From: Blepharisma stoltei ATCC 30299
Lineage: Eukaryota; Protista; Ciliophora
Direction: 5' to 3'
Assembly: GCA_965603825.1 (NCBI GenBank)
Contig: CBFDEM010000003.1
Span: 496,001 to 560,000, forward strand
DNA: 64,000 nucleotides
The notes beneath the pieces were generated by a model. It made no database searches and was not told the origin of the DNA. It was given only the letters and a program-made list of their open reading frames with translations. Of the stretch, positions 1-56,746 are shown in pieces. Every line of letters starts with the position of its first letter. Position 1 is the stretch's first letter. The position numbers and the translations under genes are program-made.

Positions 1-3000
1 TTCTGCTTTGACTTCAACTTTTGGAGCACTTGGAGCCTCAGATTGAGCTTTTGCCTTTGGTAGCTCAGCTTTTAATTTGATTCCACCATCACTTGAGCTG
101 CTACTTGAAGACTTTTTCTTTCCTACTTTGATATCAGCTTTTATGGCAGGGCCTTTTACGTCAGCTTTTAGTCCTGGAAGTTTTGCATCAGCTTTAACTG
201 CGATTCCGGCTTTCTTTTTCTTTCCACTATCACTTGAACTGCTGCTTGAAGAGGATTTTTTCTTTCCTCCGATGCTTATTGCTGCTTTTCCAGCTGGTGC
301 TTTAGGAGCTTCAATCTTAGCTTCAACTTTTCCTTTTGGTGCTTCAACCTTTACATCAGCTTTAGGCAACGCTGGTGGTTGTGCTCTAATTGCTATACCA
401 GCTTTTTTCTTATTGTCTTCACTGCTAGAACTGCTGCTGCTTGAGGATCGTTTTTTCTTTCCTCCAATATTAATTCCAATGCCTGGGGCTTTCACCTCAG
501 CTTTTCCTGCTGGAACTTTGACATCAGCTTTGACGTCAACTTTTGCCTTAGGAGCTTCTGCCTTAACAGCAATTCCTGCTTTCTTTTTATTGTCTTCACT
601 GCTAGAGCTGCTACTTGATGATGATTTCTTTTTTCCTCCGATATTTATACCTCCTTTAATTGCAGGAGCTTTTACGTCAACTTTGGCTGATGGTGCTTTA
701 GGTGCCTCCACTTTGACTGCGACTTTCTTTTTGTTGTCTTCACTAGAGCTACTGCTGCTTGAAGAGCCTTTTTTGAGACCAACTTTAACCCCAGCTTTAG
801 TTTCTGGAGCTTTAGGAAGATTTACGTCAGCCTTTGCGGTTGGGCCTTTTACGTCAACTTTAGCTGATGGTGCCTTAGGGGCTTCTGCTTTGATGTTGAT
901 TCCAACTTTCTTTTTCTTGTCACTATCACTGGAAGAGCTGCTTGATGAAGATTTTTTCTTTCCTCCAATTTTGAGGGCAGGTGCTTTAACATCTGCTTTT
1001 ACATCAGCTTTACCTTTGATTTCTGGACCTTTGACGTCAACTTTTGCAGCTGGAACTTTAGGAGCGTCTACTTTCACTGCAATTCCTGCTTTCTTCTTGT
1101 TGTCTTCACTGGAGCTGCTTGATGATGATCTCTTCTTGCCTTTGACATCAATACCTGCTTTAATTGCAGGAGCTTTGACATCAACTTTTCCAGATGGTGC
1201 TTTAGGTGCTTCAACTTTAACCTCAGCTTTGGCAGCTGGGACTTTAGGACCGTCAACTTTGATTCCAATTCCGCCTTTCTTTTTATTGTCTTCGCTAGAG
1301 CTGCTTGATGATGAAGATGACCTTTTCTTTCCTCCAATCTTAATATCTGCCTTTACTGCTGGAGCTTTGACGTCTACTTTTCCAGATGGGGCTTTAGGTG
1401 CTTCGGCTTTGACTTCAACTTTAGCTGCTGGGACTTTAGGAGCGTCAACTTTGATTCCAATTCCCCCTTTCTTTTTATTGTCTTCACTAGAGCTGCTGGA
1501 TGATGAAGAAGATTTTTTCTTTCCTTTGATATCAATACCTCCTTTAATTGCAGGAGCTTTGACATCAACTTTAGCAGATGGGGCTTTAGGTGCTTCAACT
1601 TTAACCTCAGCTTTGGCAGCTGGGACCTTTGGAGCGTCTACTTTGACTGCGATTCCTGCTTTCTTCTTGTTATCTTCGCTGGAGCTGCTTGATGATGAAG
1701 ATGATCTTTTCTTGCCTCCAATTTTGATGTCTGCCTTTACTGCTGGAGCTTTGACATCAACTTTTCCAGATGGTGCTTTAGGTGCTTCAACTTTAACCTC
1801 AGCTTTGGCAGCTGGGACTTTAGGAGCGTCAACTTTGATTCCAATTCCGCCTTTCTTTTTATTGTCTTCACTAGAGCTGCTAGATGAAGAAGATGATCTT
1901 TTCTTTCCTTTGACATCAATACCTGCTTTAATTGCTGGAGCCTTGACATCCACTTTGCCAGATGGTGCTTTCGGTGCTTCAACTTTAATTTCAGCTTTGG
2001 CAGCTGGGACTTTAGGAGCTTCAACTTTGATTCCAATTCCGCCTTTCTTTTTGCCGCTATCGCTTGAGCTGCTTGAAGATGAAGATGATCTTTTCTTTCC
2101 TCCAATCTTAATATCTGCCTTTACTGCTGGAGCTTTAACATCAACTTTTCCAGAAGGAACCTTTGGTGCATCACCTTTGACTTCAACTTTGGCTGCTGGG
2201 ACTTTAGGAGCGTCAACTTTGATTCCAATTCCGCCTTTCTTTTTATTGTCTTCACTGGAGCTGCTTGATGATGAAGATGATCTTTTCTTTCCTCCAATCT
2301 TAAGATCAACTTTCCCACTAGGGGCTTTTACATCGACTTTTCCTGAAGGAACTTTAGGAGCATCTCCTTTGACTTCAACTTTGGCTGCTGGGACTTTTGG
2401 AGCGTCAACTTTGACTGCAATTCCTGCTTTCTTCTTATTATCTTCACTAGAGCTGCTGGAAGATGAGGATGATCTTTTCTTTCCTTTGATGTCGATTCCT
2501 CCTTTGATTGCTGGAGCTTTCACATCAACTTTGGCAGATGGTGCTTTAGGAATATCGCCTTTTACTTCAACCTTGGCGGCTGGTACCTTTGGAGCGTCGA
2601 CTTTGATTCCAACGCCTGCTTTCTTTTTCCCGCTGTCGCTTGAGCTACTAGATGATGAGGATCCTTTCTTTCCTTTGATATTGACTCCTCCTTTAATTGC
2701 TGGAGCTTTGACGTCAACTTTGGCTGCTGGGACTTTAGGAGCGTCTACTTTGATTCCTGCTTTCTTCTTGTTATCTCCGCTAGAGCTGCTTGATGACGAG
2801 GATGATCTTTTCTTTCCTCCAATCTTAATGTCTGCTTTTACGGCTGGAGCTTTGACATCAACTTTTCCTGATGGGGCTTTAGGTGCTTCAACTTTGACTT
2901 CAACTTTGGCAGCTGGGACCTTTGGAGCATCTACTTTGATTCCAATTCCACCTTTCTTTTTATTGTCTTCACTAGAGCTGCTTGATGATGAAGAGCCTTT

Positions 3001-6000
3001 CTTTCCTCCAATCTTTAATCCTGGAGCTTTGACATCAACTTTTCCTGAAGGAACCTTTGGTGCATCACCTTTGACTTCAACTTTAGCTGTAGGAACTTTA
3101 GGAGCGTCAACTTTGATTCCAATTCCGCCTTTCTTTTTGTTGTCTTCACTAGAGCTGCTTGATGATGAAGATGATCTTTTCTTTCCTCCAAGCTTAAGAT
3201 CGACTTTGCCACTAGGAGCTTTTACGTCAACTTTGCCTGAAGGAGCTTTAGGAGCGTCACCTTTGACTTCAACTTTTGCTGCTGGTACTTTAGGTGCATC
3301 AACTTTGATTCCGATTCCTGCTTTCTTCTTATTATCTTCACTAGAGCTGCTGGAAGATGAGGATGATCTTTTCTTTCCTTTGATATCGATTCCTCCTTTG
3401 ATTGCTGGAGCTTTCACATCAACTTTGGCAGATGGTGCTTTAGGAATATCGCCTTTTACTTCAACCTTGGCGGCTGGTACCTTTGGAGCGTCGACTTTGA
3501 TTCCAACGCCTGCTTTCTTTTTCCCGCTGTCGCTTGAGCTACTAGATGATGAGGATCCTTTCTTTCCTTTGATATCGATTCCTCCTTTAATTGCTGGAGC
3601 TTTGACGTCAACTTTGGCTGCTGGGACTTTAGGAGCGTCTACTTTGATTCCTGCTTTCTTCTTGTTATCTCCGCTAGAGCTGCTTGATGACGAGGATGAT
3701 CTTTTCTTTCCTCCAATCTTAATGTCTGCTTTTACGGCTGGAGCTTTGACATCAACTTTTCCTGATGGGGCTTTAGGTGCTTCAACTTTGACTTCAACTT
3801 TGGCAGCTGGGACCTTTGGAGCATCTACTTTGATTCCAATTCCACCTTTCTTTTTGCCGCTATCGCTTGAGCTGCTTGATGAAGATGATCTTTTCTTTCC
3901 TCCGATCTTAATATCTGCTTTTACTGCTGGAGCTTTGACGTCAACTTTGCCTGAAGGAACTTTTGGAGCATCTCCTTTAACTTCTACTTTGGCTGCAGGA
4001 ACTTTTGGACCGTCTACTTTAATTCCAAGTCCACCTTTCTTTTTGCCGCTATCACTTGAGCTGCTTGATGATGAAGAGCCTTTCTTTCCTCCAATCTTTA
4101 ATCCTGGAGCCTTGACATCAACTTTTGCTGCTGGGACTTTAGGTGCATCAACTTTGACTGCGATTCCTGCTTTCTTCTTTCCGATATCACTAGAGCTGCT
4201 TGAAGATGAGGATCTTTTCTTTCCTCCAATCTTAATATCTGCTTTTACTGATGGAGCTTTTATGTCAACTTTACCTGAAGGAGCTTTAGGAGCGTCTCCT
4301 TTGACTTCAACTTTGGCTGCTGGGACTTTTGGAGCGTCTATTTTGATTCCTACTTTCTTCTTTCCACTGTCACTTGAGCTGCTTGATGAGGATGATCCTT
4401 TCTTTCCTCCAATTTTGAGACCAGGAGCTTTGATATCAACTTTGCCTGAAGGAGCCTTTGGAGCTTCACCTTTTATTTCAACTTTTGCTGCTGGGACTTT
4501 AGGACCATCAACTTTGACTGCAATTCCAGCTTTCTTCTTTCCGCTATCACTAGAGCTGCTTGATGAAGAAGATCCTTTCTTTCCTCCAATTTTGAGACCA
4601 GGTGCTTTAATATCAACTTTTCCAGAAGGAGCCTTTGGAGCTTCAGCTTTGACTTCAACTTTGGCTGCTGGGACTTTTGGAGCATCTATTTTGATTCCTA
4701 CTTTCTTCTTTCCACTGTCACTTGAGCTGCTTGATGAGGATGATCCTTTCTTTCCTCCAATTTTGAGACCAGGAGCTTTGACATCAACTTTGCCTGATGG
4801 AACCTTAGGAGCTTCAGCCTTGATTGAAATTCCCGCCTTTTTCTTTCCATCACTGGAGCTGCTAGACGAGCTTCTTTTTCCGCCTATTTTAACTGCTGGT
4901 GCTTTGATATCAACTTTTCCTGATGGTAATTTCGCACCTCCTTTGATTTCTAATTTGGCTTTTCCTTTTCCATCACTGGAACTTGAGCTTGATGACTTCT
5001 TTTTGCCTCCTATACTAACTGCTGGTGCTTTAATTTCTACTTTTCCTGATGGCAATTTAGCGTCTCCTTTAATTCCGATTTTCGCTTTCTTTTTATCGTC
5101 ACTAGAACTACTGCTGCTTGATGATCTTTTTCCTCCAATTTTCAAATTAACACCTACTGGTTTGATTTCTACTTTGGCTTCTGGAGGTTTGTTTTCGACT
5201 TTTGCGGTTTGTCCTTTAGGAAGCATAATTCTCCCAGTTTGTTTTGGTAGCATAATTTTGGCTGAAGGCGCTTTTGGAACTTCAGCTTTTACTTCGATTT
5301 TTCCTTTAGCCTTTCCATCACTTGAGCTGCTGCTACTTGAAGAGTCTTTTTTGGTTAATTTAACTTCTACTTTTGCTGCAGGTACTTTCGGAGCATCGAT
5401 TTTTACACCCACTTTCTTTTTTCCGTCGCTTGAGCTGCTGCTGCTGGATGATCTTTTTCCGCCGATTCTAATCCCAGGAGCTTTGACATCAACTTTTCCT
5501 GATGGTAACTTAGCGTCTCCTTTAAGCTCTACTTTCGCTTTTGCTTTTCCGTCAGAGCTACTGCTGCTTGATGATCCTTTTTTGCCTCCAACTTTCAATT
5601 CTGCTTTGATTCCTGGAGCTTTAATATCAACTTTTCCTGCAGGCAACTTAGCGTCACCTTTAACTGCAACTTTTCCTTTGCCCTTTCCGCTGTCACTTGA
5701 GCTGCTACTTGAAGATCCTTTTCTTTTAATTTCTGGAGCTTTTACTTCAATTTTTCCTGATGGCAACTTAGCGTCTCCTTTAATAGTGATTTTTGCTTTG
5801 CCTTTTCCGCTATCACTGGAGCTGCTGCTTGATTTATCGACTTTAATACCTACCTTTGGCCCTTTAATATCTACTTTTCCAGCTGGTAGTTTAGGTGCTT
5901 CTCCTTTGATTTCGATTTTACCTCTTTTCTTTCCGTCAGAGCTAGAGCTGGAACTAGATGATTTTTTGACTTTGAGACCAACTTTAATTTCTGGCTTAGG

Positions 6001-6380
6001 AGCTGCAACATTTACTTTTGGCCCTTTCAAGTCAGCTTGAACTACAACTTTTCCTTTCTTTTTGCCATCACTGCTGCTAGAAGAGCTGCTTCCTTTTTTC
6101 TTTTTATTGAGGTTAATATCAACTTTAGGCCCTGCAACGCCTGCTTTGATATCCCCGCCAATTTTGATTTCTGCTTTAGGTTTTTTCTTTTTACCATCAC
6201 TGCTGCTACTGCTGCTTGAGCCCTTTTTCTTTTTAGGTACATTTACCTTAACATCTAGACCTCCTTCAATTTTTGCCTTTTTGTGGTGTTTTTTGCGCCT
6301 TTTCCCTGGATCAGCACTGTCGCTAATGCTTGAGCTTGAGCCAGAGCTAGAAGAACTTGAAGATGAGCTTTTTCTTTTAC
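1..6380 (-). repeat. Coding tandem repeat array, roughly 40-62-aa units such as KKRSSSSSSSSEDNKKKGGIGIKVDAPKVPAAKVEVKAPKAPSGKVDVKAPAVKADIKIGG
   Basis: Recurrent gagctgcttgatgatgaag / tcaacttt motifs. Near-identical higher-order blocks: ~2421-2960 vs ~3315-3854 (offset 894) and ~4300-4440 vs ~4650-4790 (offset 348). Confidence 0.95.
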
Positions 6381-7551
6381 TTGGGACGTATGGCTCGACC
6401 TTTAATTCGACTGCTGCTCCTCCATCTGGGGTCGTTAATTTTTTATTTATTTCTTTAGGCTCTCCAGCTTCAGTTTTCTTTACAACTTTCATTGTTGGGC
6501 CAGTTCTTGGGGTGTTTTGGTCTCTCTTTTTACTTCCAATGTTGAAAATCTGCCATGATTTTTCGCCTGGTCTTCTGAAGGCGAATTTAGGGAAGGAAAC
6601 AAAAACTGGGGCACTTGTGCTGGTTACTGCAGGGTAGTTTTCTGGGAACTCAAAGTTTAAGGCTTCAAGGAGTTTTACCTCAGGTGTAGAATCTGCCATG
6701 TTGACTAAGTAGCTTTGAGAATTTGGTTTATTTGTCTTTGGGTCGAATCCGCCGACAATGGTAACTTCATTTCCTTTAACTGCACAGATTGGCTTAACAG
6801 CTTTGATAGGAAGTGAAAAAGGTTCCTTCTTAAAGGCAAGAGAAGTCAAGTCCAAGCTGTAAACGTTTTTATTTACTTTATTTTTGCCATGTTCATCAAA
6901 TCTATGGCCACCTACAAAGTAAATTTTATCATTATAAAGGAAGGTTCCTGGTAATAGTAGACCACTGAGTGGGAATTCTTTGTCCGCATGTGTTTTTTCT
7001 TTTTTCTCTTCGTCTTTTTTCTCTGTTACTTTTTTCTGGAGAAAGACAGTAATTTCGTTTTTCGCAATGTTCTCTTCTACGCTTTTGAAGTATTCCCAAG
7101 AATTTTCTTCTAAGTTGAATCTCATTAATGGTGCTGGTTCTTCTGTAGAAGATGCGACTTCATCCTCAGGCTCAGCCAATCCTCCTACATAGTAAACCCA
7201 ACCCTTGTGTTCATACAAACTACCTTCTTTGGATGGTATTGGCAGGTTGCAGAGGTTGGTCAGCTTCATTGCTTCAGTATCGGCAAGGACAACTTTATTG
7301 GTAAGACATGAAGAGGAATCGCTGCCTCCAGCGAGCATAATCCTGTTCTTTGATAAATATCCGACAGCTGAATCAGAACGAAGCTTGATGCCTGTGGAAA
7401 ACTGGATTTTTTTGATTTTTCCATCAGGGTGGAGGTGAAGAATTTTCTTTTTATGTCTATTTAGGTAATAAAACTCTGGCATTTTTGCGCCTGCTTGGGG
7501 TCTAATTGTACGCTGCGTGGCAACGTCTTGCTTTGAAGTGCATGCTCCCAT
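1..7551 (-). CDS. Giant (>2517 aa, runs off the window) Kelch-like beta-propeller protein with N-terminal MGAC acylation motif and a long K/P/A/V/G + poly-Ser repeat tail
   Basis: ATG at 7551: MGACTSKQDVATQR...PEFYYLNR...RIMLAGGSD...VYYVGG...IYFVGG...VTIVGG (Kelch-type GG motifs). The frame is consistent down to base 1 (spot-checked). The N-terminal ~330 aa are clearly paralogous to 11787..13517. Absent from the ORF track because no stop lies in the window. Confidence 0.9.
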   Translation of the reverse strand, partial: MGACTSKQDVATQRTIRPQAGAKMPEFYYLNRHKKKILHLHPDGKIKKIQFSTGIKLRSDSAVGYLSKNRIMLAGGSDSSSCLTNKVVLADTEAMKLTNLCNLPIPSKEGSLYEHKGWVYYVGGLAEPEDEVASSTEEPAPLMRFNLEENSWEYFKSVEENIAKNEITVFLQKKVTEKKDEEKKEKTHADKEFPLSGLLLPGTFLYNDKIYFVGGHRFDEHGKNKVNKNVYSLDLTSLAFKKEPFSLPIKAVKPICAVKGNEVTIVGGFDPKTNKPNSQSYLVNMADSTPEVKLLEALNFEFPENYPAVTSTSAPVFVSFPKFAFRRPGEKSWQIFNIGSKKRDQNTPRTGPTMKVVKKTEAGEPKEINKKLTTPDGGAAVELKVEPYVPSKRKSSSSSSSSSGSSSSISDSADPGKRRKKHHKKAKIEGGLDVKVNVPKKKKGSSSSSSSDGKKKKPKAEIKIGGDIKAGVAGPKVDINLNKKKKGSSSSSSSDGKKKGKVVVQADLKGPKVNVAAPKPEIKVGLKVKKSSSSSSSSDGKKRGKIEIKGEAPKLPAGKVDIKGPKVGIKVDKSSSSSSDSGKGKAKITIKGDAKLPSGKIEVKAPEIKRKGSSSSSSSDSGKGKGKVAVKGDAKLPAGKVDIKAPGIKAELKVGGKKGSSSSSSSDGKAKAKVELKGDAKLPSGKVDVKAPGIRIGGKRSSSSSSSSDGKKKVGVKIDAPKVPAAKVEVKLTKKDSSSSSSSSDGKAKGKIEVKAEVPKAPSAKIMLPKQTGRIMLPKGQTAKVENKPPEAKVEIKPVGVNLKIGGKRSSSSSSSSDDKKKAKIGIKGDAKLPSGKVEIKAPAVSIGGKKKSSSSSSSDGKGKAKLEIKGGAKLPSGKVDIKAPAVKIGGKRSSSSSSSDGKKKAGISIKAEAPKVPSGKVDVKAPGLKIGGKKGSSSSSSSSDSGKKKVGIKIDAPKVPAAKVEVKAEAPKAPSGKVDIKAPGLKIGGKKGSSSSSSSSDSGKKKAGIAVKVDGPKVPAAKVEIKGEAPKAPSGKVDIKAPGLKIGGKKGSSSSSSSSDSGKKKVGIKIDAPKVPAAKVEVKGDAPKAPSGKVDIKAPSVKADIKIGGKKRSSSSSSSSDIGKKKAGIAVKVDAPKVPAAKVDVKAPGLKIGGKKGSSSSSSSSDSGKKKGGLGIKVDGPKVPAAKVEVKGDAPKVPSGKVDVKAPAVKADIKIGGKKRSSSSSSSSDSGKKKGGIGIKVDAPKVPAAKVEVKVEAPKAPSGKVDVKAPAVKADIKIGGKKRSSSSSSSSSGDNKKKAGIKVDAPKVPAAKVDVKAPAIKGGIDIKGKKGSSSSSSSSDSGKKKAGVGIKVDAPKVPAAKVEVKGDIPKAPSAKVDVKAPAIKGGIDIKGKKRSSSSSSSSSEDNKKKAGIGIKVDAPKVPAAKVEVKGDAPKAPSGKVDVKAPSGKVDLKLGGKKRSSSSSSSSSEDNKKKGGIGIKVDAPKVPTAKVEVKGDAPKVPSGKVDVKAPGLKIGGKKGSSSSSSSSEDNKKKGGIGIKVDAPKVPAAKVEVKVEAPKAPSGKVDVKAPAVKADIKIGGKKRSSSSSSSSSGDNKKKAGIKVDAPKVPAAKVDVKAPAIKGGVNIKGKKGSSSSSSSSDSGKKKAGVGIKVDAPKVPAAKVEVKGDIPKAPSAKVDVKAPAIKGGIDIKGKKRSSSSSSSSSEDNKKKAGIAVKVDAPKVPAAKVEVKGDAPKVPSGKVDVKAPSGKVDLKIGGKKRSSSSSSSSSEDNKKKGGIGIKVDAPKVPAAKVEVKGDAPKVPSGKVDVKAPAVKADIKIGGKKRSSSSSSSSSDSGKKKGGIGIKVEAPKVPAAKAEIKVEAPKAPSGKVDVKAPAIKAGIDVKGKKRSSSSSSSSSEDNKKKGGIGIKVDAPKVPAAKAEVKVEAPKAPSGKVDVKAPAVKADIKIGGKKRSSSSSSSSSEDNKKKAGIAVKVDAPKVPAAKAEVKVEAPKAPSAKVDVKAPAIKGGIDIKGKKKSSSSSSSSSEDNKKKGGIGIKVDAPKVPAAKVEVKAEAPKAPSGKVDVKAPAVKADIKIGGKKRSSSSSSSSSEDNKKKGGIGIKVDGPKVPAAKAEVKVEAPKAPSGKVDVKAPAIKAGIDVKGKKRSSSSSSSEDNKKKAGIAVKVDAPKVPAAKVDVKGPEIKGKADVKADVKAPALKIGGKKKSSSSSSSSDSDKKKKVGINIKAEAPKAPSAKVDVKGPTAKADVNLPKAPETKAGVKVGLKKGSSSSSSSSEDNKKKVAVKVEAPKAPSAKVDVKAPAIKGGINIGGKKKSSSSSSSSSEDNKKKAGIAVKAEAPKAKVDVKADVKVPAGKAEVKAPGIGINIGGKKKRSSSSSSSSSEDNKKKAGIAIRAQPPALPKADVKVEAPKGKVEAKIEAPKAPAGKAAISIGGKKKSSSSSSSSDSGKKKKAGIAVKADAKLPGLKADVKGPAIKADIKVGKKKSSSSSSSDGGIKLKAELPKAKAQSEAPSAPKVEVKAE

Positions 7552-7672
7552 ATTAATTATATTAAGGAATTATGGCCACATAATCTTGGCTTATACGTTA
7601 AATAGGACTTAAATAAGAGATAGAGATAAGGACAGAGCATAGAAATAATCACGTCTTAAAATTAGAAATAAC

Positions 7673-18541: not shown

Positions 18542-18883
18542 AGAAGATTCATAAATTAATTAGTTATAATTCTGTTTTTGAAAATATTAGTGTTATAGCC
18601 AGTGTTGAATTAGAATTGTTTAGGATAATTTAGGGTATTTTTTTGTAAGGATTTATGATATTTTTATTTGAGAAAGATATAGCTTGGTGATGCATAAAAT
18701 AAGGATTATCTATAAATTTGATTAGATTTATTATTGCCTCTAAAATTAAAATAGATTTTTAATATAAGAAATTTAATCAATAGTAAATTAAAATGCCATA
18801 ATTTTTAAAGTCATATAAAATCTTGTAATGGCCTTTAAATTGATTTGTTTACATATTTGCTATGCACAAACACCAATAAAAAT

Positions 18884-21800
18884 ATGTCTGACGAAGACGA
18901 ACGAATTGCCTTAGAAAATTACCTTATTCTTAATGATAAAGATTTAGCTCTTGAATCGTTTCCACCTACAAGCCCTTTTGGAAAGTATCTAAAAGCAAAC
19001 AAGCTGCTGAAATCAGGCCAATTTAAATCACCTAAATTTAAAGCAGAGTTAAAAGAACTTAAAAAGCTTAAGCCAAGCTTCCATAGCACTTTAGAATTAA
19101 GGCAGCTTATAAAGAGCCTTGAACATTCTACGAATTCTACTGAAAAATCAAAAATCATAAAGAAACTTAACGATAAATATTTTCATTATAAATTTGACTA
19201 TGAAATTCCAGATCTAGCTGAAAAACCCCAGAATTCTGAGTATAGTTCACATTTGAACGAAAAACTATTTGAAAATGATTTATCAAAGGCTCACCGCGAG
19301 CTGAAAATTTATTCTATACTCGATAGTGACGGCAAACAATGTCTAAACGCAAATCAGATGACAATAGCAGTTTTTCAAATTTTTGCAAGAGAAATGCCTT
19401 ATCTTCATGATATTCCTGGAGTCCCAGAAAAATTCGCAGAAGTCCTTGATAACGGAGAAAATTATTCAATAGATTGGTTTAAAAAAATGAGTGTTAGTCA
19501 GCTAAATAAACTTATGGAATTGCATAAAGAGATAGCTAAAAATGTTGAATTTGTTTTATGCTATTTTGAGAAGAAATATTTGTATAAGATAGATAAAAGT
19601 GATGCTTGAAATAAATTAGAAATTTATAAAAAAGTGTGATTTGAGATTCAAGATTATTCTGAAAACATAAATCAAATAAAAAGCATTGTTTTGATTAGCA
19701 TTTTGAAATTAAACTTGAGATTTGGTGTTTATGATGAAGATTTATTTATTAAATATTTAAATAATCATAGACCAACCCCCTTAATATACAAGAATAACCC
19801 AAAATGAGATCATAATGGTCGTTTTTATTATCATATGAAAAGTCTTCCCGATGAAGAAAAGCTTATAGAGCAATATTTAGAAGAAATATTTAAAAATAGG
19901 GTGGATTTCAAAGAATATGAAGAATTTTTCACAAATGATTTTATTAGAGCACAGTTTGCTAGAGCAAAAATTTTGTCTGGGGAATCTTTATTAAATTATA
20001 GCAAAAATTTACCACAAGCCGAAATAAATAAAATTGCAGAATTGATTGAACTGGAGCCATGCAGAGAAAATCCAAAATTATTTGAGAGAAATCAATTGAT
20101 AAAATTCTCATTAATTACCAAAAATATAACAAAACTTTTAGTCAAAATTCTAGAAATAAATACAAAGTCCTATTATTTAGAAAAAAATATGGAAATTGAT
20201 CAATCTATAGAGCTAGATGGCTTATTAGCAAAGCATGAAATTATTTATGAGTTTAATGATTCACCATTAATTCGTGTTAAAAGGACGTTTGAGTTCCCAG
20301 AAATCACGGATTTATGTGGAATCTTTGTTATTGAATTTATTGGAAACGGCAGATGCTGCAGGACGATCATTAAAAAAGGATTTTTGAAATATGTTTCAAA
20401 AATCACCGATGCAGGACATTTATTTATGATTTTGGACGAAAATAACCAAATATGCAAAAATCCTGGGTCAGGTGTGACTGTTGATGGAAGGTTTTATTCT
20501 ACAGAAAATGAAAAAGGTCAAGCTTTCGTGCCTTTTGCAAACCAAATGTCTGAAAAAAATATAATAATAAGTGATGGGACAATTTGTGAATTAATTCAAA
20601 GATTTGAACATTTAAGTGAAAACTATAAACTAAAGGCAGCCTTTTTTGTAAATCAAGAACAATTTATAAGCAAGAAGAAGATCACAATTTCTATAAAGCC
20701 AAGACTCTACATAAATGATGTAAAAGCTTTAAATTCTTTATTGACAAATTGCAAAGCGACAATATCTACTGTGGATCTTGATAATTGCACATCTTCATCT
20801 GTATATGAAAATCTTTCAATTCCCAAAAAAAACTCCCTAATAAATCTTGACTTCATAGTCCCCTCAAATTTGCAAAAAATTTTTATCAGCTTTTCAGGAG
20901 AAATCGAAAGCATCATCAACAAAAATAAAGTTTCTCTCGAAGAAAAATTTGAAATGAATATAAAGGAAAAATCGGAATCTGAATATATTTATGGTGCTTA
21001 TTTGAGATATGGAATGAAAGGCTATCAAATAGAATTAAGGGGGAGAAATGGAGAATTTTTGCCTTGGCAAAAAATTGAACTGACTTTAAGACATAGGTAT
21101 TGAACAGATACTAAAACAGAAATTTTAATATCAGATGAAACAGGAAATGCTTATCTAGGCGATCTAAAAAATATTTATGCCATTAAAGCGTCAATAAATA
21201 TCAACCAAGACTGCCAAAACTTTCTATGAAAGATAAATGACTTCACTTGCAAGATAAATTATCCCTGCAAAATTAATCTCTGCCAAGGAGACGAATTTGG
21301 AGTGCCTTTTGATATTAATGGAATAAGAGATGTGCACCTTGTATGAGTCAGCCTCACAGAAATGAATAATGGAACCGTTATTGATGATTTAACAAATTAT
21401 ATAGAAATTGATTATGGAAAATCAATGATATGATTACGAGGCTTACCAATAGGAAGATTTCGTTTGAAAATTAATCAAAATTATATTGATATTGAAGTTC
21501 ATGACGGAATTCATTTGTTGGATAATCAATTTATTCTAACTGACCACTATGCTGTAAAAACTCCAAAGCAATATAGAACTCTAAGTATTGGCGCTTATGA
21601 AATCAAGGATAATCAGTTAAAAGTAAATTTATTAGGAGACTCACAAAACTCAAACACTTATGCATTTTTTTCAAATTATATTTTTAATGAGAATGCTGAC
21701 GTCTTTGATAACCTCAGTGCTTTGCTAGGTGAAATTGGCAAGACATACAATTTTTCAAAAAAAAAGTCTATATATAAGAATAGCGAATTTTTAGATGAAG

Positions 21801-24800
21801 AATACAGATATATAATTGATAGAAAATACCAACCCAAAGATGTTGGAATAGGATTGAAAAAACCTCAATTGCTTTTAAAAAGATTGTTGAGAAATGAAAC
21901 TCACACTGAAAATCAAATTGCTAAGCATGGGGATAGGTGTTATATGGCTACAAAAGGAGGAAAGGGATTGGCAAGCAGAGCCAGAAAAAAATGCGGACAT
22001 TCTTCTTCTGATCTTTATGCTTATATGGATAACTTAGGAAAAACAATTAATATCAATTATACAAAGAAGCCTGCAATTGATTTCTTAAAATACGCTGCAG
22101 AATGGGTGTTTTCTCCCGTCTCAGAGCATGGGACAGTTTCTATTCCATTAAAAGACTATAAGTATCCACATATTTTATTAATCGCAACTAATGGAGACAA
22201 CACTTCTGTGAGATTAATAACAATACCTCAAGCAGAAATTCAAATGCAATCCCTTCAGCATCAATCAGTATTGGATTTAACTCAGTACTATTCAGAGCAA
22301 ATACAATGCAGACCTGCATATCCAGGAGAAATAATTACAATAAACAATTTCTCAATCTATCAAATTATTTCATCAATTTCTAAACTTTACCATCTGCAAA
22401 AAGAGCTGATAATATTGAGCAATAATAATATAGATTATGACGAATGAAGCTTTTTAGATAAGTGGCAAAATCTAAAATTAGCAAAAAAACTTGAAATTTA
22501 CGATAAATTCGTATCTCATGAACTGAATCTATTTTTATATAAAAAAGACACAAACTTTTTTGATGAGATAATTGCCCCTTTCTTGGGATGCAAAATGGAG
22601 AAAGATTTTATTGATAAATATTTATTATCAGAAAATCTTGATGAGTATATGGATATTCATAAAATCACGAATTTAAATGCTCTTGAAAAAGTTCTGCTTA
22701 TTGAGAGAAATGTTGAAAAAAATCCATTATTTGCAGAAGAGTTGGCTAGATTATTAAAAAATGAAAGTGACTCATTACCAGTTGAGTATAACGTGAGAAA
22801 GCAAAGAATCGAGCTGGCGCTGAGATTTGATTCTAATAAGGTGGATGAAAATATATCACCTGCTTCTCCATCTGGTAGCCCTAAAGAAGAAGAAGAATTT
22901 GGCAGCGCTGAAGAAGACGAAGAAAATGAAGATGAAGAAGATATACAAGAAAAAGCAAATATTATGAGTGCTAGAAGAGATATTCCAGTTTATTATAAAA
23001 ATCCTCCAGAAGTCAAAGAATTTTGCGAAACTTTTTACTATGGGATTAAAAATTTGAACAAAAATAAAGAGCTAGTCAAAAATAGTCCATTTTGGTCAGA
23101 TTTGGCATTATCAATTCTTAATAAAAAGCCATATGTTTTGAGTGAAGATGTGCTAGCAACTACAAGGACTCTTACAGAATTAATAAGTTCATTAGCATTC
23201 ACAGACCTTCCTTTAATTGAAAATCCTATTGAAACTGCAACATCTAGAAATTCAGTTTCCTTTAAATCCAATAGCAACTTTTTGATTTTCTATAAGGAAA
23301 TTGTGGCTACACCGAGTGAAAATTATGATCCAATATTGATGAGGCATAAATATTTTGATCCAGCTGATAGATATACAGAGAATGAATTTGGGAAAAAAGA
23401 TAAAATAGTCACTGAATTTATTAACTCTTGATAGGCAATTTTTTTTTTAATGAAAATATTTTTTAAAAAAAAACTTAAATAATCTTCAATCAATTGTTAC
23501 CATTTAGATTAAGCAAAAAACATATGGCTGCCAAGTAATAATTACCAATACTACAGGATGGGAAATTAATGTTGATCTTTTTACAGAAATTCCTCAAGGT
23601 AGCATCCCTATAAAACCGCCAAAGAGCTACACTAGCGAAATTTTTAATATTGAAAATTTCTATACAAAAACATATGAGTATTTATTTTATTTCCCTTATA
23701 GTGGGCAATTTACTCATTATCCAGGTAGTGCTTCATATAAGGACAAAGTTATAGCAAAATGTGAGCCATCTAATTTGCTTGTGCATGAAAAAGTTGCAAT
23801 ATCAAATTTTACAAGCTTTAAAGATTTGGCTTTGACTGGACAAAAAGATATGATTTTGGAGTTCTTGAGAGCTGAAAATTTATTCATAAAAACAAAAGAA
23901 TTCAACGTGAAAGATTTTTGCTGAATGCTGAAAGACGAAATTTTCTGGAAAAAAACTATTGAAATTCTAAAGCAGAGAAATTATTATTTTGCCGAAATTT
24001 GAAGTTTCGGGATTTTTCACAACGATATTAGCATTATTCGTGAGTTAATGAGCATGAACAAGCAGATTTCAACAGAGCTTGGGCGATTTTTTGATTCATC
24101 AATAATAACAACTGACAAAGGAGACTACATTCATTTAGAGTATGATCCATTAATAAATACAAGAGCCCATAAATTGGGGAAAAATCCAAGAATAGCCAAT
24201 ATAGAATTTAAAAATTCTTATAGAGCCTTTTTAGAATTACTATGTGAAAAAGGAAGCCTTGATATTTCAGATCAACTCTGCTTTGTCCAATATTTAGCTT
24301 ACCAAGACCGCATTTCTGAAGCTAAAGAAATTTTTGGCACAATCCCTCTCCATCCTTCAACTGAAAAGCCTGGCTCATCATATTTGCAAATCCAATATGA
24401 TTACTTTTGCTGCTATTTTGACCCTGAAATGCTGCCCATAATATCAGCTTTATATGAAAATTATCCAATAGAATCATGGAGAAAATTATTCAACGAAGCA
24501 GCCAAATTTTCAAGAGAAACTCAAGACCAAGATATTTCTATACTTGACCCTCAAGAAAAAGAGCCTACATTGATGTTTTCTATAGAAAAAGATTACATAA
24601 GTCTGCAGTACAAATGGGTTAAAGCATGCAAAATCCGATTTTATCGAGTTGATTTAGAAATCTTATTCTCAAAAAATCCATTTTTCATTGGAAATTCTCA
24701 ACATTTTAAATACGTTAAGCCATATTTTGATATAGAAATAAATTTGCAAGATGATGGAGAAGCAAAAATAAAAATTCCTGAGCTGCTTATAGGGCAAAAT

Positions 24801-25130
24801 ATTGTTATTGAAATTGATTATGGCGTGTATACAGTGTCGAAGTCTCATTTTTCTGCGAATTTAAAATTCAATTTGATTGAGAGGTATGGGATTATTAAAA
24901 TTATGAATGAAAATTTGGCACCGATAGCAGGAGCTTATATAAAAGTGTTTGTAAAGCAGAAAATCGGAGATATTAAGTTTTATAAGGATGGGTATACAGA
25001 TATAAAAGGAAAATTTGATTATGTGTCGCTAAATGTTAATAAGATATCAGAAGCTGAACGATTTGCAATTTTAGTAGTCGATGAAGAGCTTGGATCTTTG
25101 GTTTTGGAAGCAAATCCACCTCCTCAATAA
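18884..25130 (+). CDS. Large uncharacterised protein (2052 aa after removing the 88-bp insert at 23420-23507), possibly with macroglobulin-like beta domains
   Basis: The track ORFs at 18845, 19835, 21464 and 22583 share one frame, joined through TGA=W codons with no TAA/TAG between them. The frame changes only at the insert. Conserved-looking motifs: SHELNLFLYKKD, YGCQVIITN, EIPQGSIP, FYFP..G.F.HYP, LEYDPLINTRAH, FYKDGYTDIKGKFDY. Confidence 0.85.
23420..23507. mobile_element. Putative retained internal eliminated sequence (IES), 88 bp, ATTAA terminal direct repeats
   Basis: ATTAA at 23420-24 and 23508-12; about 15 of 88 bases are G/C; carries an in-frame TAG. Excision leaving one repeat restores ...EFI-KQKTYGCQV... 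and the exact downstream frame. No GT-AG intron solution removes the stop. Confidence 0.75.
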
Positions 25131-27805: not shown

Positions 27806-29149
27806 TTAAGCCTTTTTAGAAATATTTAAGTATTGAAATTAAATCCATTATTCAATAATAAAGGTTTTAAGTATTTAAATCTATGAAAATTTTTAATTTT
27901 AAGGAAAAATAAAATAATGTTATGGCATTATGTAACTTTTTAAGACTGCATATAAATAACTATATTTTTGCTCTTAACTTGAATAGAAATAATTTCAACT
28001 ATCCTATCACTATTTCAATACACTTAAGGATGAACTAATTTTGTATGAGTAAAATTAAAATTATTAAACTTATTGAAAATATTTGTAGAATTAAAACCAA
28101 AAAGTTTAAATGGCAATTTTGTATACGGCAAGACATGTCCTCAGCAAGCAGCACTAAGCTTTCCAAAACAGACTCCTGCTCCACAGCAACCAAATCAAGC
28201 AATTCATGAATCCCGCACCTTTTCTCAGTCTTTGCTCTTTCAAGTGGACACAATTCACCGCTGCAATGCGAACAAAATATTTTTGTTTAGTCACTAATGG
28301 GAGTAAGTGAAATTTAAGAGAAAAAATTTAAATGCATGAAATTTCGTTATATTCGGATAGATTTGTGAAGTGAATTGAATTGAAGAGAGACATGAAGAAA
28401 GGTTCATAGAAATAGACAACAGATTTAAACGCTTATATATGGAGTAATGAAGGTGAGAGAGGATAATGCTGAGACTCAGCGTTGCAGAAGTTAATAATAA
28501 TATAAATATTGTTGAATTGATGAAGAGTTGACAAGAGTAATTTCTTACTATAGGCATGCTATTATGATTAAAATGAGAGTCATTGCAAGGTATTAAAATA
28601 GTTAATTTTAACTTAATCACATAGCAATTGGTAGAATCTTTAATTATCTTTCCAAAATTCTTTTACACATAATTTATTGAAAATAAAAGTCTTTATTGTT
28701 GATATAATACCTAAGTTTAAAATAACTTTAAATAGGAATTATTTTATTATATCGATTTAATTATAGCACACAACTTATATTTCTAAGACTTATATTCTCA
28801 TTAGGCAAATTTTATTTTTCTTAACTTGACTTCCAAAAAATATTTTTTGCTAAGCAGTTATAATATATCAAGCCACCCCAGCATAAGAAATATTAATAAA
28901 AATACAAAAATTCCACATAGCTTTCTGAATTATTTTTCCAAAAAATAAAATTTTTTATTTGAAAAGATTGTCACTGATCTATTAAGCCAGCCTGAATTTT
29001 TTCAAGGTCATCCAAATTTAAACTTCTAAACCTTCAAAGACAATTTTTAACGGGTTTTGCTAAATATCCTTTTACATAAATCTAACTGTGGAAATAATTT
29101 TTTGCTTCCATTTTCTCTTATGCTTATTGTTGATAAAATTAAATTCAAA

Positions 29150-31180
29150 ATGAATTATCTCTACCTCCTCTTATTTACAATTGCCAGCTCTGAGCCTGTT
29201 TTAAATGAGTGCCAAACTGAGTGGGCAAAAATTATTGAATCAGGAAAAGATATACTTTCTTCAAATCGTTCAGATTATACCAAAATGTTCATGTATTCAG
29301 GATTCACCCTCAATAATCTCGGTCAGTATGACTCCTGCAATGAACTATCCCACGCAAAGTATGTTATTATGCTATTATCAGGGCAGCCTCCTTTACTAAT
29401 AGCATTATGTGGGCCTAAGGTCTGCAATGAAACTGATTACCAAAATATTTTCCCCAAATTTTTATCTAATGATTTTGATGGAGGAATAGTACCTTCTTCC
29501 TTAAAATTGCCACTAGAAGCTGCAAGCCAAGGGCCATTTATTATGTTTTCTAAAGAATTTGCAGATAAGCACTTTGATAGTTATAACGCTGGGGCTATTC
29601 TTATGATTATTTTTACTTCAATAATAATAGGAATAATTATTATAGCTACAGGTTATGAGTACTGGATCACAGAGAAAGCGTCGCTTACCAAGCAAATTGA
29701 AAAAGACTCAAAGCCTCAGCAGCTATCAAATGCAGAAAAATATTTATTATGCTTTTCGTTAATTACAAATTTGCAGAAGCTGTTTTTAAGTAGAAGTCAA
29801 GAAAAGTTTGGGAAAAAAGACACGTTGGAGGTGCTAAATGCAATGAGAGTTTTGTCGATAGGATGGGTTATACTAGGCCATACAATTGTTAATGCTATCA
29901 CAATTTCGGTTTTAGCAAATCCCAATAAACTTTTAGACTTTATTAAAACAGAAAGCATGGTTATCCCTCTCACAGGAACTTTTTCAGTCGACACATTCTT
30001 TTGGATTTCTGGATTCCTCGTCAGCTACTTATTAATAATTGAACTGAACAACTCCAAAAAAGTGAATTGGATCATGGTTTATGTCCACAGATATTTAAGA
30101 ATCGTCCCACTGTATTTATTTATCATTTTATTTTCTTGGGCACTCCAAAAGCATATGGGCAGTGGGCCAATGTGGTGGAACGAATACTGGTATAACAATG
30201 ACTGCAAAAAATGGTGGTGGACTAATATTTTATTCGTCAACAATTTAGTGCCTGATTGAAAAGGCAGCAATTGTTTAGGCCAGTCCTGGTATTTAGCTGA
30301 TGATATGCAGTTTTTTATTATAACTCCTCCAATTTTGTATTTATACCATAAATTCAATAGATATATTGGGTGGGCAATTTTGACATTTTTAATTGGGTTT
30401 TCTATCATTATTTCAGGGGTAGTTGCCCATCATTTTACTTTAAATGCTGTTGGGTTTTCATCAGAATCGTGGACGAATTATAATAATTATTACTATATAA
30501 AGCCGTATTGCCGTGTAGGGGTATATGCGCTTGGGATTATTACTGGAATTGTTGTGTATTCGTATCGCCAGTATCAAAAAGATCAAAAAGTTTATGACCC
30601 ATTAGGTTTATGGATTGGGAAAAAGTTGGAAAATAAAATTATTAGATACATTGTTGGGTTTTTGGGACTTGCACTTATCAATATTATCATATGGGTAGAA
30701 TATGACACTACGAAAAACCCAGGATCTGCAATGGAATTTCCTAATTGGACTGATGAAGAAAACCAAACTTTTATAGCTTTTAATAGGTTTGTGTATGGCC
30801 TTGGGTTAACCTTGATTCTTCTTCCTACACTTTTAGGTCACTTTACATGGATTATATGGATAATGTCATTAGAAATCTGGACTCCATTAGCAAGATTAAC
30901 GTTCTGTTGTTACTTGGTGCAGTCTAATGTTATTGATATGATTTATCATGCCCAAACTTCTGCAGTTTACTTAGACAATTTCTTGATCTTCAAAGATGCG
31001 ACATGAAATTTCATGTTCAGCTTTTTAATTGCTTGGCCTTTTGTCCTTATGATCGAAATGCCTGCACTAGCACTCGAAAAATTAATGTTTTCCTCAGTAA
31101 GAGCAAAACAACCGCCTATTCAAGATGAAGAGAAAAGTAGGTCTCTTTTGGTCATGAATGGGAAGAAATCGGAAGAATAA
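29150..31180 (+). CDS. NRF-6/acyltransferase-3 family O-acyltransferase, paralog 2, 676 aa
   Basis: Colinear with 25772..27805. TGA codons at PD-W-KG and AT-W-NF align with TGG in the paralog. TAA at 31178-31180. Confidence 0.92.
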
Positions 31181-31231
31181 AGGTAAAAGAGTATCTTTAA
31201 TAAACGATTCTTAATAACCTCTTTTTATATA

Positions 31232-31963
31232 ATGGAAAATAGTCATTATTTATATCAATCTGAGAGTCAAAAAATAAAAAAAGTGGTTATTTCAGAATCA
31301 GAATCAATTTCTCCTTACTGCGAATCCCCAATTTCTCCAAACAAGTCTTCATCAGATCTTATGCTTCTCAATGATTTGAAATATATGATAGAATTAATAC
31401 AAACGACACTTTCGCGTTCAAGTGTAATTTTTCAGCCGCCTCATTTACGGTCAAATGATATTAGAGCTACTTTAAATTCTTTGAAATACCTTACAGAAAC
31501 ACTTTGTGATGAGTTTCTTGTTTTAATTAAACGGCCACTTAAGGAATCATCTGAAGTTACAAGTCCAACTATCGCTTCGATTCCAAAAAATGATGAACTT
31601 TTATTTTATACAGAAAAGTTAAGAATTTTCCCAAATTCCCAAGATTTGATACAAAAAATCGCCAAATCTCCTCACGAAGTTTTATTATCACAACAAGACT
31701 GCGAAGATCTTACCAAAATTTTACTCACCTCAATCCGGAATTTTAAAGAGATTTCATATAAAGACAAATACAAAGAAATGGCCGAAAAAGCTATAATATA
31801 CGGTAAACTTCTATCAGACCTCCGAAAACAAGTAAGGCTTAAAGAAGAACACATAGAAATCCTTGAAGAAAACATCAGAAAAAGTACTTATTATACAGAT
31901 TGCAATAATATTGCTAATATCGTCGACTACGCCAAGCACCGTCAAAATTTAATAAATTTTTAA
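31232..31963 (+). CDS. Hypothetical protein with C-terminal coiled coil, 243 aa
   Basis: ATG-TAA ORF with coding-like composition; heptad-like LLSDLRKQVRLKEEHIEILEENIR. Confidence 0.7.
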   Translation: MENSHYLYQSESQKIKKVVISESESISPYCESPISPNKSSSDLMLLNDLKYMIELIQTTLSRSSVIFQPPHLRSNDIRATLNSLKYLTETLCDEFLVLIKRPLKESSEVTSPTIASIPKNDELLFYTEKLRIFPNSQDLIQKIAKSPHEVLLSQQDCEDLTKILLTSIRNFKEISYKDKYKEMAEKAIIYGKLLSDLRKQVRLKEEHIEILEENIRKSTYYTDCNNIANIVDYAKHRQNLINF

Positions 31964-38054: not shown

Positions 38055-38720
38055 TTACAAATCAATATTTAGCACATTGTTCATTATTTTTTTCTTCTTC
38101 ATATACACTTCTACTATATCTTCGCTTTTCTTTACTTCATAGACGCTCTTTCTAGATGAACAAATTTCTATTATTTCTTCATCTTCCAAGCATACACAAT
38201 CGTCCTCCATTTCTTCTTCTAAAAATTTCTTCATATTAGCTGAAATCATTCAATTTATGTCTGGATCATGTAAATACACGTCAATTTTTTTTTTAAATTT
38301 CGGCTTATCAATATTTATCAGCAGCTTGAGCTTTTGGAAGCCAAATTTTTCGTCCTCGGGGTCTCGTTTTGTGCTTTGTTTTATTATAAAATTTTTCAAT
38401 AGAGAAAATTTGTTTTCTTTGAAGACTGCTAATATAATATTTTTGGGGACTTTTTCTATAAGAATTCGAAGAGGCAGAAGGTCGCCGCAGCGGAATAATG
38501 ATTCGTGAAGGATTGGCTTGCCTCCTTTGAGGAAAAAGTTGCCAATACTGATTTGTGAATAAACTGATAATGCTTGATAGAGCAAGGAGTAATTTTTGGT
38601 CGAAATACAATCAAGTCAAGCAGCTCTGATTTCGTCTTTATTTGGCCTGCGCCGGATGAAGGAATTTATAAGGGATTCGTTGGATGATTTTTCAGATCGA
38701 TCTCGCTTTTGGCCAAGCAT
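38055..38720 (-). CDS. Hypothetical protein, 221 aa
   Basis: ATG at 38720 (MLGQKRDRS); two TGA=W codons join the in-frame track ORFs 38250..38585 and 38055..38249. Confidence 0.7.
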
Positions 38721-39195
38721 GTGTCTTCTATTATATTATATATCTATAACTTAAAAGTTCATAGTCATTTTATAATTGCTAATCACTATAATAAGCTGAA
38801 ATATTGGATTTATCAAAGAAATCTAATTATGAGATGATTAAATTTCTTTAAGAAACACAACACTAGAACTTATATCTGCGTCTTTTGCCATCAATTCACG
38901 CCTTTTAGTCAATTCTCAGTTCATTTCTGTAAATTAAGCTCTTCTTATCCTGAATCAAATTACCTACTGATTTCTCCCTATTCAGTCTACCCACAAAAAC
39001 CAACATTTTACTATAATTATTTTTTGCTTTTATTTTTGCTTTTCTGAGTTTCTAATTATTTCTTTACTAATTCCAGTATAAAGGTCCTTATATATGCTTA
39101 TTATTTTATAATTAAACCTAAAATTTTCTTAGTATCGTCTGGTAACTTTTAATAAAAAGGAGTTACGATCCGTCTCAGGTTCCGTCTCTTGTAGG

Positions 39196-39208
39196 TCTAA
39201 AAATCGCC
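39196..39208 (+). promoter_or_regulatory. Candidate upstream motif TCTAAAAATCGCC, preceded by two CCGTCTC copies
   Basis: Ends about 42 bp before the ATG at 39250; identical to 7673-7685 on the minus strand. Confidence 0.4.
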
Positions 39209-39249
39209 TTACTCCATATCTAAATCAGCTTAATTTTAATGGAATAATA

Positions 39250-40563
39250 ATGCTTGAATTTCTAGAAGGCTACTTAACCACTACCAACATCCTACTTACA
39301 CTATTCCTTGCCTTGTACATTCTTTACTACAGAACGTTCCACCACTACAGGTTCGAACAAAAAAGCGCCTTTACCAAAGGCCGCCGGTCTATGGGAAAAA
39401 CCCTCCCAGCTTTTCCCAACGGATGGTTCTGTGTGGCAAGGTCTGGAGAAATCAAGAAAGGCGAAGCCAAACATATTGACATGCACGGCCAAAACATCGC
39501 AGTTTTCAGAGGAACTGATGGAATTATATACGCAATCGACGCCTATTGCTCACACATGGGCGCAAATTTGGCTGAAGGAGGCAAAGTCAAATTCGGCAAA
39601 GGACTACAGTGTCCTTTCCACGGGTGGGTTTTTGATGGAGAAACAGGGAACTGTGTATCTGGCGCTGACATGAAGCAAAGAGAAGCCGATAAGTTTACTT
39701 ATAGCGAAAAAGCTACAGAAGGGCTTAAAAAGGAATGCAAAACTAAAATCGGCGTCAAAAAATGGCAAGTTAAGGAGTTTGGCGGTTTTATTTTTGTATG
39801 GTATCACTCAATAGAAGAGCTTAGAACTGCTCCGCCACCTTTTGAGCCGCTAGACATTACTCCATTCATGGAAAAACTCTCATATCGTGGGGTAAGCATA
39901 AATAAAGTCCAAAGCCACGTCCAAGATATCCCAGAAAATGGTGGCGACTTAATGCATTTTTACTATGTCCATAGTGCCTTCTTACCATTTACCGACCTCT
40001 TCAAAGCCAGATGGAGAGCCAAATGGACCAAAGGCGACGACCCAAAACTCAGAGAAATCATGAAGCACGAGGTACCATTAATCGACCAGTTCAAAACTCA
40101 GCTGATGGATAGGTTTTTAACTGAACAAAACGCCAAATACATTGGCGTCCTTTCTTTAGACAGCTATATGATCCTCCCAGGCTGCAGCGAAATTTTCTTC
40201 TTCAACGCCACTGCGTTCCAAGTTGGCTCAGGGCTGGTCTACTTGTTCTTAAAAAGCCAATTTTTCGAAGCCGTGCTGTTCCAGCACTTGTCGCCGCTCG
40301 AGAAATATAAGCACGAGGTCTTCCATGACATGTGGGCGAGTAGTTATTTGCCTTATTGTATAACAGCACTTATGCTGAGATTGGAAGCTCAACAGGTCAT
40401 GAACGACGGAAAAGTATGGGATAATAAGCAATTTGCTATGAGCACTTATTATGATTTGAGAGAAGAACCGGATAGGATGCTGCTTAACTGGAGATCATGG
40501 TATGCGCAGTTTTATGAAGGATGCAGAGAAGCTGAGGAAGAAAAAGAAAGGTTGTCATGGTAA
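39250..40563 (+). CDS. Rieske-type sterol C7-desaturase (Neverland/DAF-36/Tetrahymena Des7 family), 437 aa
   Basis: N-terminal TM; PAFPNGWF; Rieske CSHMGA...CPFHGW; non-heme iron ENGGDLMHFYYVH; DGKVWDNK; WRSWYAQFY. Confidence 0.92.
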   Translation: MLEFLEGYLTTTNILLTLFLALYILYYRTFHHYRFEQKSAFTKGRRSMGKTLPAFPNGWFCVARSGEIKKGEAKHIDMHGQNIAVFRGTDGIIYAIDAYCSHMGANLAEGGKVKFGKGLQCPFHGWVFDGETGNCVSGADMKQREADKFTYSEKATEGLKKECKTKIGVKKWQVKEFGGFIFVWYHSIEELRTAPPPFEPLDITPFMEKLSYRGVSINKVQSHVQDIPENGGDLMHFYYVHSAFLPFTDLFKARWRAKWTKGDDPKLREIMKHEVPLIDQFKTQLMDRFLTEQNAKYIGVLSLDSYMILPGCSEIFFFNATAFQVGSGLVYLFLKSQFFEAVLFQHLSPLEKYKHEVFHDMWASSYLPYCITALMLRLEAQQVMNDGKVWDNKQFAMSTYYDLREEPDRMLLNWRSWYAQFYEGCREAEEEKERLSW

Positions 40564-52120: not shown

Positions 52121-52133
52121 TTTATAATTACAT

Positions 52134-53051
52134 TTATAAATGATTATTCATTTCTAAGTGCTCAAGCCGAAGTGATAACCAGTTAATAGTCCTCCCAATG
52201 ATTTCTGGGAATTCTGGCTCATTTGCGATGAAATGGTGCATATTTTCGTAGATTACGAATTCTTTGTCTTCAGCCCGCGACCATCTGCCGAACGTTTCTG
52301 CTTGTTCTGGGTCTGAAAAATTGTCTTTTCCACCTTGGAAAAGGATAAAAGGCGTTTTTATGTCCCATAATCTCCCTCTAAGCCTCTCTATAGCATTGAT
52401 TAAATTTACCGTTGTACCAATTTGGATTCTCCCTTTTACCATGTCAGGGTTTTCGTTTCACCATGAAGTATTATGAGGATTTCTCGATAAAGTTTCAATA
52501 TCAATAGGCTCTGCCAGCATTGCAGGATAACAAAAAGAAATTCACTTGGAAAACTTATATTGGCATCGTGAAAAATTTGAATTTACTCCAATCTGGGGTG
52601 CAAAAAGAATAAGGCCTTTTATGACAGCTGGGTAGCTTAAAGCGATTTCTAGACAAATTGTGCCACCAATTCCGTCACCTGCTAAAAAGATTGGGGTGTC
52701 TTTAGGGTAATGCTCTTTTGCTCGAAAAATGTATTCGGCTGCGTCTTCGTAGGTATTGTTTAGATCAGAATATACACCTCGAGGACCGCTGCTTTTGCCA
52801 TGGCCAGCTTGATCGAAAGCAAGGACTTCAAATTTCTGCTTGGCAAGTTTGGAGGCGAAGTGGGTGTAATAGCTTGAAGAAGAAAATGACCCGTGAAATA
52901 GAAAAATAAGAGCTCGGGGGTTTGATACTGGGTAGCGGTAGGTATGGAGCTTGTGGCAAGAGCTGGAATGCAGAGATAGCCAGTCTTCTTCTGGGAAAAA
53001 GACACCTGCACTAGGAATCACGCCTTGGTATTTGACCCACCAGTCACTCAT
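52134..53051 (-). CDS. Monoacylglycerol lipase family, paralog C, with the nucleophile Ser replaced by Gly, 305 aa
   Basis: MSDWWVKYQG, LFHG, FDQAGHGKSSG, GDGIGG (vs GESxGG), QGGKD, MHH; two TGA=W joins. Confidence 0.88.
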
Positions 53052-56735: not shown

Positions 56736-56746
56736 GTTATAACTAA

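Follow-up and report, generated by a model that had tools for sequence, protein, structure and literature searches.

The window analysed here, a stretch of 64,000 nucleotides from Blepharisma stoltei ATCC 30299, covers positions 496001-560000 of contig C3 in an assembly of 41.46 Mb in 64 contigs. Its long open reading frames are broken when TGA is read as a stop and joined when TGA is read as Trp; this code and the AT-richness agree with those of the somatic (MAC) genome published for the strain (PMC9942806). With translation table 4, the plus strand contains two neighbouring open frames, 18839-23431 (1531 codons) and 23508-25127 (540 codons), which differ in frame. Removal of 88 bp between them leaves one stop-free open reading frame of 2052 codons, running from ATG 18884 to TAA 25128-25130. 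The upstream part of this host gene (18884-23424, plus strand) comprises codons 1-1513 and 2 nt, and the downstream part (23513-25130, plus strand) comprises 538 codons and the TAA and is the best-conserved portion of the family.

The segment that interrupts the gene (23425-23512, plus strand) lies between two copies of a direct repeat, ATTAA, spaced by exactly 88 bp, and its length includes the right copy. The left copy (23420-23424) closes the upstream part of the gene; it contains TA, TTA/TAA and TTAA, and its codons, ATT-AA(G), encode Ile-Lys of a conserved FIKQK motif. At the right copy (23508-23512) the downstream frame opens, immediately after a TAG in that frame (23505-23507). The upstream frame enters the insert as ...GAA TTT ATT AAC TCT TGA TAG, where TGA is Trp in this code; the product of the gene as assembled thus gains N-S-W after the left ATTAA and ends at the in-frame TAG (23432-23434, plus strand), giving 1516 aa. 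The GC content of the insert is 17.0%, versus 30-32% in the flanking kilobases, and only 0.13% of the 88-bp windows inside the host gene are as AT-rich; runs of T10 and A9 are present, and the insert puts the TGA-TAG in frame. The ATTAA repeat is not an effect of composition: only 0.23% of the positions in the window show identity over 5 bp with the sequence 88 bp away, a figure that falls to 0.075% when the identical letters have to include TA. The original prediction had described an 88-bp, ATTAA-flanked insert of about 17% GC with an in-frame TAG, each of which we re-found in place, and had proposed that its removal yields EFIKQKTYGC and the frame of the ORF at 24048, as the stop-free 2052-codon frame bears out. 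Ribosomal frameshifting was also considered and was ruled out, because there is no overlap between the open frames, of which the upstream one closes at 23434 and the downstream one is closed by the TAG at 23505-23507.

A DNA search of the genome with the insert matched its own locus alone, showing that it is single copy and largely non-repetitive. We found no terminal inverted repeat at its ends beyond a weak TAA(C)TCT; the only other pairing is between internal T-runs and A-runs. Compared with a MITE or another cut-and-paste transposon, with a piggyBac (TTAA) or Tc1/pogo (TA) target, the insert carries a target-site-like duplication containing TTAA/TA, and it has neither the terminal inverted repeats nor the multiple copies of such elements.

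The same genome contains four uninterrupted paralogs of the host gene, C8 (162540-168830; L015 1041-7331), C4 (L016 1206-7436), C44 (L017 752-7018) and C33 (L018 1129-7230), with 2097, 2077, 2089 and 2034 codons, respectively. The family is an orphan one, with five copies of about 2050-2100 aa in this genome. A metagenomic homolog from another organism (L003, 5004 bp), the sole homolog matched by a word-based protein search with a 327-aa piece, also has one continuous frame across the equivalent site. The word-based search with this 327-aa query returned no near-identical protein from other Blepharisma data that might span the junction, and the protein of the 24048-25127 ORF had no exact match on record in public assemblies. 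After deletion of the 88 bp, the host sequence KDKIVTEF-IKQKTYGCQVIITN aligns with the paralogs free of gaps: host ...VTEF followed by IKQKTYGCQVIITN stands against ...ITQFIKQKIYACQVVITN and similar sequences, the paralogs reading KDKTITQFIKQKIYACQVVITN, KEKSITQFIKQKIYTCQVVITN and KEKNINQFIKQKIYGCKVVLTN at the site, and the Phe is invariant in 6 of the 6 aligned sequences. In the DNA of the paralogs there is one target copy at this point (ttc/ATAAAA, ttc/ATAAAG and ttt/ATCAAA); the second ATTAA of the host gene is therefore a duplication brought with the insert. As judged by these sequence comparisons, the 88 bp is a true DNA insertion into coding sequence, because the four paralogs and the metagenomic homolog run through the site and the conserved FIKQK motif is rebuilt by the 88-bp deletion only. 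The proposal that a coding sequence had been interrupted, and that the gene is restored by removal at ATTAA, is thus upheld by the colinearity of all five sequences.

The gene calls on L003 are fragmented, and its alignment to the Blepharisma protein changes frame several times, the last time at about 4860-4900. These shifts may reflect tiny introns, which would point to a heterotrich-like ciliate in the environmental sample. Elsewhere in the window, four pairs of adjacent same-strand ORFs are seen under TGA=Trp, 38571-40560 (plus), 50561-53072 (minus), 29051-31960 (plus) and 55875-59857 (plus), with gaps of -17, -17, +9 and +14 nt, respectively; they are likely to be either single genes with tiny introns or neighbouring genes packed very tightly. 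Given these further pairs with small gaps, the 88-bp case may not be the window's sole frame change. A 2523-codon open frame on the minus strand (1-7569) runs off the start of the window; strand composition there is strongly skewed (AT skew about -0.4; GC 42%) and several frames are open, which points to a coding region of low complexity with many repeats. Scans of the window for tRNAs and against Rfam gave no match.

We looked for relatives of the host protein by profile and by predicted structure. Pfam gave no match with the pieces of the host gene. The C8 paralog has zero TGA codons and served as the family's stand-in for tools that stop at TGA; its Pfam matches were all below threshold, the best being MG4 at an E value of 0.009. 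Language-model neighbours of the family include macroglobulin MG2/MG3 clusters at 0.86-0.88. The structure predicted for C8 around the site (overall pLDDT 53) contains a beta-sandwich at pLDDT 60-77, and a Foldseek search with this model retrieved generic Ig/filamin-like matches only, at E values of 1e-3 or above. Macroglobulin-type beta-sandwich repeats may be taken as a lead, and only as a lead, to the nature of the family. In the C8 model, which is of low-to-moderate confidence, the insertion site falls in the first strand of the beta-sandwich.

The interruption could in principle mark a gene fission, in which each of the two ORFs now functions as a gene of its own and the insert is a short spacer between them. 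The insert does resemble the AT-rich intergenic spacers of the window, and the upstream ORF meets a stop 10 nt into it. However, the downstream frame offers its first ATG only at 23850, when 114 codons of conserved sequence have already passed, the break would cut the predicted beta-sandwich at its first strand, and every homolog is a single ORF. We therefore regard fission as highly improbable.

To see in which molecules the insert occurs, we turned to sequencing runs, which were examined as assembled contigs; such contigs can hide minor forms. Two runs are DNA: X1, the probable source sample of the assembly, and X6, from another sample (83 Mb of contigs). In both, the insert lies inside one contiguous contig, with 0 differences and at the depth of the contig of its flanks. 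Neither a joint nor an insert-free form was seen in the DNA contigs of X1 and X6, which can lose rare variants, and a DNA search of the assembly found no insert-free locus elsewhere. Because both DNA runs carry it contiguously, the insert is the dominant somatic form and not germline contamination. This result goes against one part of the original prediction, that germline-limited DNA is present in this assembly, as each of the two DNA runs, which come from different samples, has the insert on a single contiguous path. It also makes an artefact, whether a mistake of assembly or the incorporation of germline reads into the somatic reference, barely credible: although one of the DNA runs may itself be the source of the assembly, the independent sample X6 is identical, the depth over the insert is that of the flanks in each run, and the assembly has no alternative locus.

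The position of the insert on the main path of X1 and X6, with no joint, speaks for a more serious alternative, namely that the insertion is fixed in a young pseudogene. The 88 bp, having entered one of the five copies with either a target-site duplication or a microhomology-mediated filler, possibly in the lineage of this strain only, would then never be excised from germline or soma, and the copy would be dying while the four paralogs cover its function. With four intact paralogs such a loss would be tolerable. We consider this explanation possible, though the less probable one beside a retained internal eliminated sequence (IES), the reading that we prefer. The unique, decayed-looking sequence of the insert, which lacks terminal inverted repeats, is unlike a recent mobile-element insertion, a point against a fixed insertion.

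X6 differs from the reference at a second place in the same gene. At 23881-23889 (plus strand; TATTCATAA) its contig contains an extra 31 bp, made up of 22 new letters and a second copy of the 9 bp; this segment is partly palindromic and breaks the frame. The reference and X1 do not have the 31 bp, and the paralogs are colinear with the reference at 23881-23889. The segment looks like germline-only DNA that is correctly removed in the soma, although it is far under the first length peak, 65 bp, of published Blepharisma IESs. X6 may be a germline-enriched run, and the 88-bp insert in its contigs is predicted by every hypothesis.

Two further runs of low depth, X8 and X9, are probably RNA according to an automated guess of run type. 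Their contigs cover both flanks and 0 bases of the insert: those of X8 span 22700-23321 and 23519-23692, and the reference-type contig of X9 spans 22928-23424. The X9 contig ends precisely at 23424, which is the last base common to insert-bearing and insert-free forms, as expected if both forms were present, since the assembly graph would then branch there. This suggests that insert-free molecules exist, whose source could be a minority of somatic copies or the second strain in a mating mixture. Chance, or a variant at 23425, could also have ended the contig at 23424, but this is unlikely. If the copy is a pseudogene, the contig break would be explained equally well by an insert-free allele in that second strain; in contrast, the failure of the RNA contigs ever to reach into the insert is at odds with a fixed insertion. 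No insert-free RNA-type contig spanning the junction was seen in X8 or X9.

Downstream of the insert, 6 of the 8 variants in X8 and X9 are synonymous in the downstream frame. The mostly synonymous character of these variants argues that this frame is, or recently was, translated, and counts against a dying copy. X8 and X9 carry an allele about 2-3% off the reference (23240-23255 and 23570-24140) that is absent from X1 and X6, and which is probably that of the second strain of the mating mixture. A cluster at 23240-23255 has 4 changes in 16 nt, most of them non-synonymous.

Presence in DNA contigs together with the lack of cover by RNA-type contigs would also be expected of an atypically long spliceosomal intron, removed from RNA only, either as 88 nt with AT..AG ends or as 100 nt with GT..AG ends (23408-23507, plus strand). 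Removal of either interval restores the frame, and the insert resembles the tiny introns of heterotrichs as a non-coding interruption whose removal does so (SI of PMC9942806). In Blepharisma, however, 97% of introns are 15-16 nt long and splicing efficiency drops with length (SI of PMC9942806), whereas the intervals here measure 88-100 nt. The insert has neither the GT-AG ends nor the 15-16 nt of heterotrich introns. None of the 6 registers of the 88-nt removal, the solution colinear with the paralogs, has GT-AG or AT-AC ends, AT..AG being the nearest, and the terminal direct repeat points to an event at the level of DNA. The 100-nt GT...AG candidate was rejected, as its removal, while restoring the frame, takes out V-T-E-F with the invariant Phe and breaks the FIKQK context. 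Moreover, neither X8 nor X9 shows a spliced contig, and splicing from 23407 to 23508 would branch the graph at 23407, in contrast to the end observed at 23424. An intron is thus very unlikely.

We then compared rates of change in the two parts of the gene by Tajima relative-rate tests against three paralogs, with C33 as the outgroup; these three tests are not independent. Upstream of the insert, the unique changes in this copy and in the paralog were 132 versus 142, 147 versus 143 and 130 versus 146, that is, the rates were equal. Downstream, they were 55 versus 36, 59 versus 42 and 55 versus 36 (p 0.046-0.09), and control pairs of paralogs were balanced with no excess. The marginal excess hints at relaxed constraint on the C-terminal part. 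It could fit a period of reduced C-terminal translation, caused either by long-standing partial retention of the insert or by early pseudogenization, and its limitation to the downstream part counts among the points for the latter. On the other hand, the 538 downstream codons are free of stops and frameshifts. Furthermore, the C-terminal 540 residues of this copy are 54-57% identical to those of C8, C4 and C44, as against 43-45% upstream, and a higher C-terminal identity is also seen between pairs of intact paralogs, so the downstream part of this copy has kept the pattern of its intact relatives, contrary to what a pseudogene would suggest.

The insert can be set against what is known of IESs in this organism. 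Blepharisma stoltei has about 40,000 IESs (Seah et al. 2023, PMC9942856), three quarters of which are bounded by TA-containing direct repeats, and TTA/TAA is the likely intrinsic cut-site preference (SI of PMC9942856). About 10,800 of them are 65-115 bp long and largely non-repetitive, and about 70% of all IESs are intragenic and precisely excised (PMC9942856). The insert is like these short TA-bound IESs in lying within the 65-115 bp range, in its direct repeat with TA and TTA/TAA, in being non-repetitive and intragenic and in that its precise removal restores the ORF. Indeed, the size, the TA/TTAA-containing direct repeat and the single copy all fit published Blepharisma IESs. In other respects the insert departs from them. 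The length classes are 64-66, 70-74, 80-84, 90-94, 99-103 and 108-112 bp (PMC9942856), and 88 bp falls between the peaks at 82 and 92 bp (classes 80-84 and 90-94); its 17% GC compares with an IES mean of 33%. The off-peak length and the absence of terminal inverted repeats are equally points for a pseudogene. Above all, true IESs have a MAC retention score of 0.02 or less (PMC9942856), whereas this insert is part of the somatic assembly and of DNA contigs of somatic type; the contigs of X1 and X6, which represent the majority form, keep it, although an IES should be absent from somatic DNA. Development-specific 24-nt small RNAs have low coverage on the periodic IESs (PMC9942856).

Two other classes offer a comparison. 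About 10,000 'cryptic IESs' have been described as MAC-resident segments that are deleted in a minority of reads, with a median retention of 95% (SI of PMC9942856), and they are regarded as genuinely somatic DNA cut out in error (PMC9942856). The insert resembles them in its presence in the MAC reference, its TA bounds and its size range, and the locus would belong to this class in the operational sense if any insert-free reads exist. In contrast to cryptic IESs, however, the paralogs show that the segment does not belong to the gene, and to excise it would be the right result. In Paramecium, IES retention in somatic genomes is variable and partly heritable (discussed in PMC9942856, refs 60, 61). 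Like the retained IESs of Paramecium, the insert is a TA-bounded intragenic segment that stands in the soma and inactivates or truncates its gene; it differs from them in lineage and in IES length regime.

Taken together, we favour the reading that the insert is a retained, poorly excised IES-type segment in the soma of this strain, to which we give a probability of roughly 55%. A short, decayed, non-repetitive AT-rich segment would have entered the gene at an ATTAA target within the Phe-Ile-Lys codons. In this lineage a domesticated PiggyBac excisase clears such segments out of the somatic nucleus as it develops, cutting at the TA-containing repeats and leaving one copy; here this would produce a single ATTAA and an uninterrupted ORF of 2052 aa. 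In the strain that was sequenced, excision would mostly or entirely fail, making the insert part of the somatic (MAC) genome, and most copies of the gene would then encode the 1516-aa product, devoid of the conserved C-terminal 538 residues. The poor excision may be due to the 88 bp lying between the favoured 82- and 92-bp classes. We infer that the segment is of germline (IES) origin, that the excisase acts on it and that molecules lacking the insert exist. A retained IES accounts less well for the off-peak length, the lack of a terminal inverted repeat and the persistence of the insert in both DNA runs, the last being unlike the retention of 0.02 or less of true IESs.

The original prediction had also raised the idea that activity of the gene is regulated by excision, which is speculation. 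A related proposal, that retention versus excision is a heritable or developmentally set switch whose states differ by strain or clonal line, appears very doubtful. If true, it would mean that this paralog makes the full protein of 2052 aa in one state and, in the other, a form of 1516 aa that lacks the conserved C-terminal domain, and would parallel, in an early-branching ciliate, the epigenetic IES-retention switches of Paramecium.

Retention of this kind is a phenomenon already described for this species, and the value of the locus is that of a well-characterized instance and not of a new mechanism. If the insert is a genuine IES kept by the soma, it would be a clean, paralog-anchored natural case of genome-editing failure in Blepharisma, in which correct editing can be specified to the base, the length of 88 bp is off-peak and internal controls are provided by four intact paralogs. 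With such cases one could probe what makes a short IES excisable, be it helical phasing, end sequence or small-RNA cover, and test whether the catalogued 'cryptic IESs' include true IESs that have been retained. At this locus in particular, the idea that an off-phase length impairs excision is testable.
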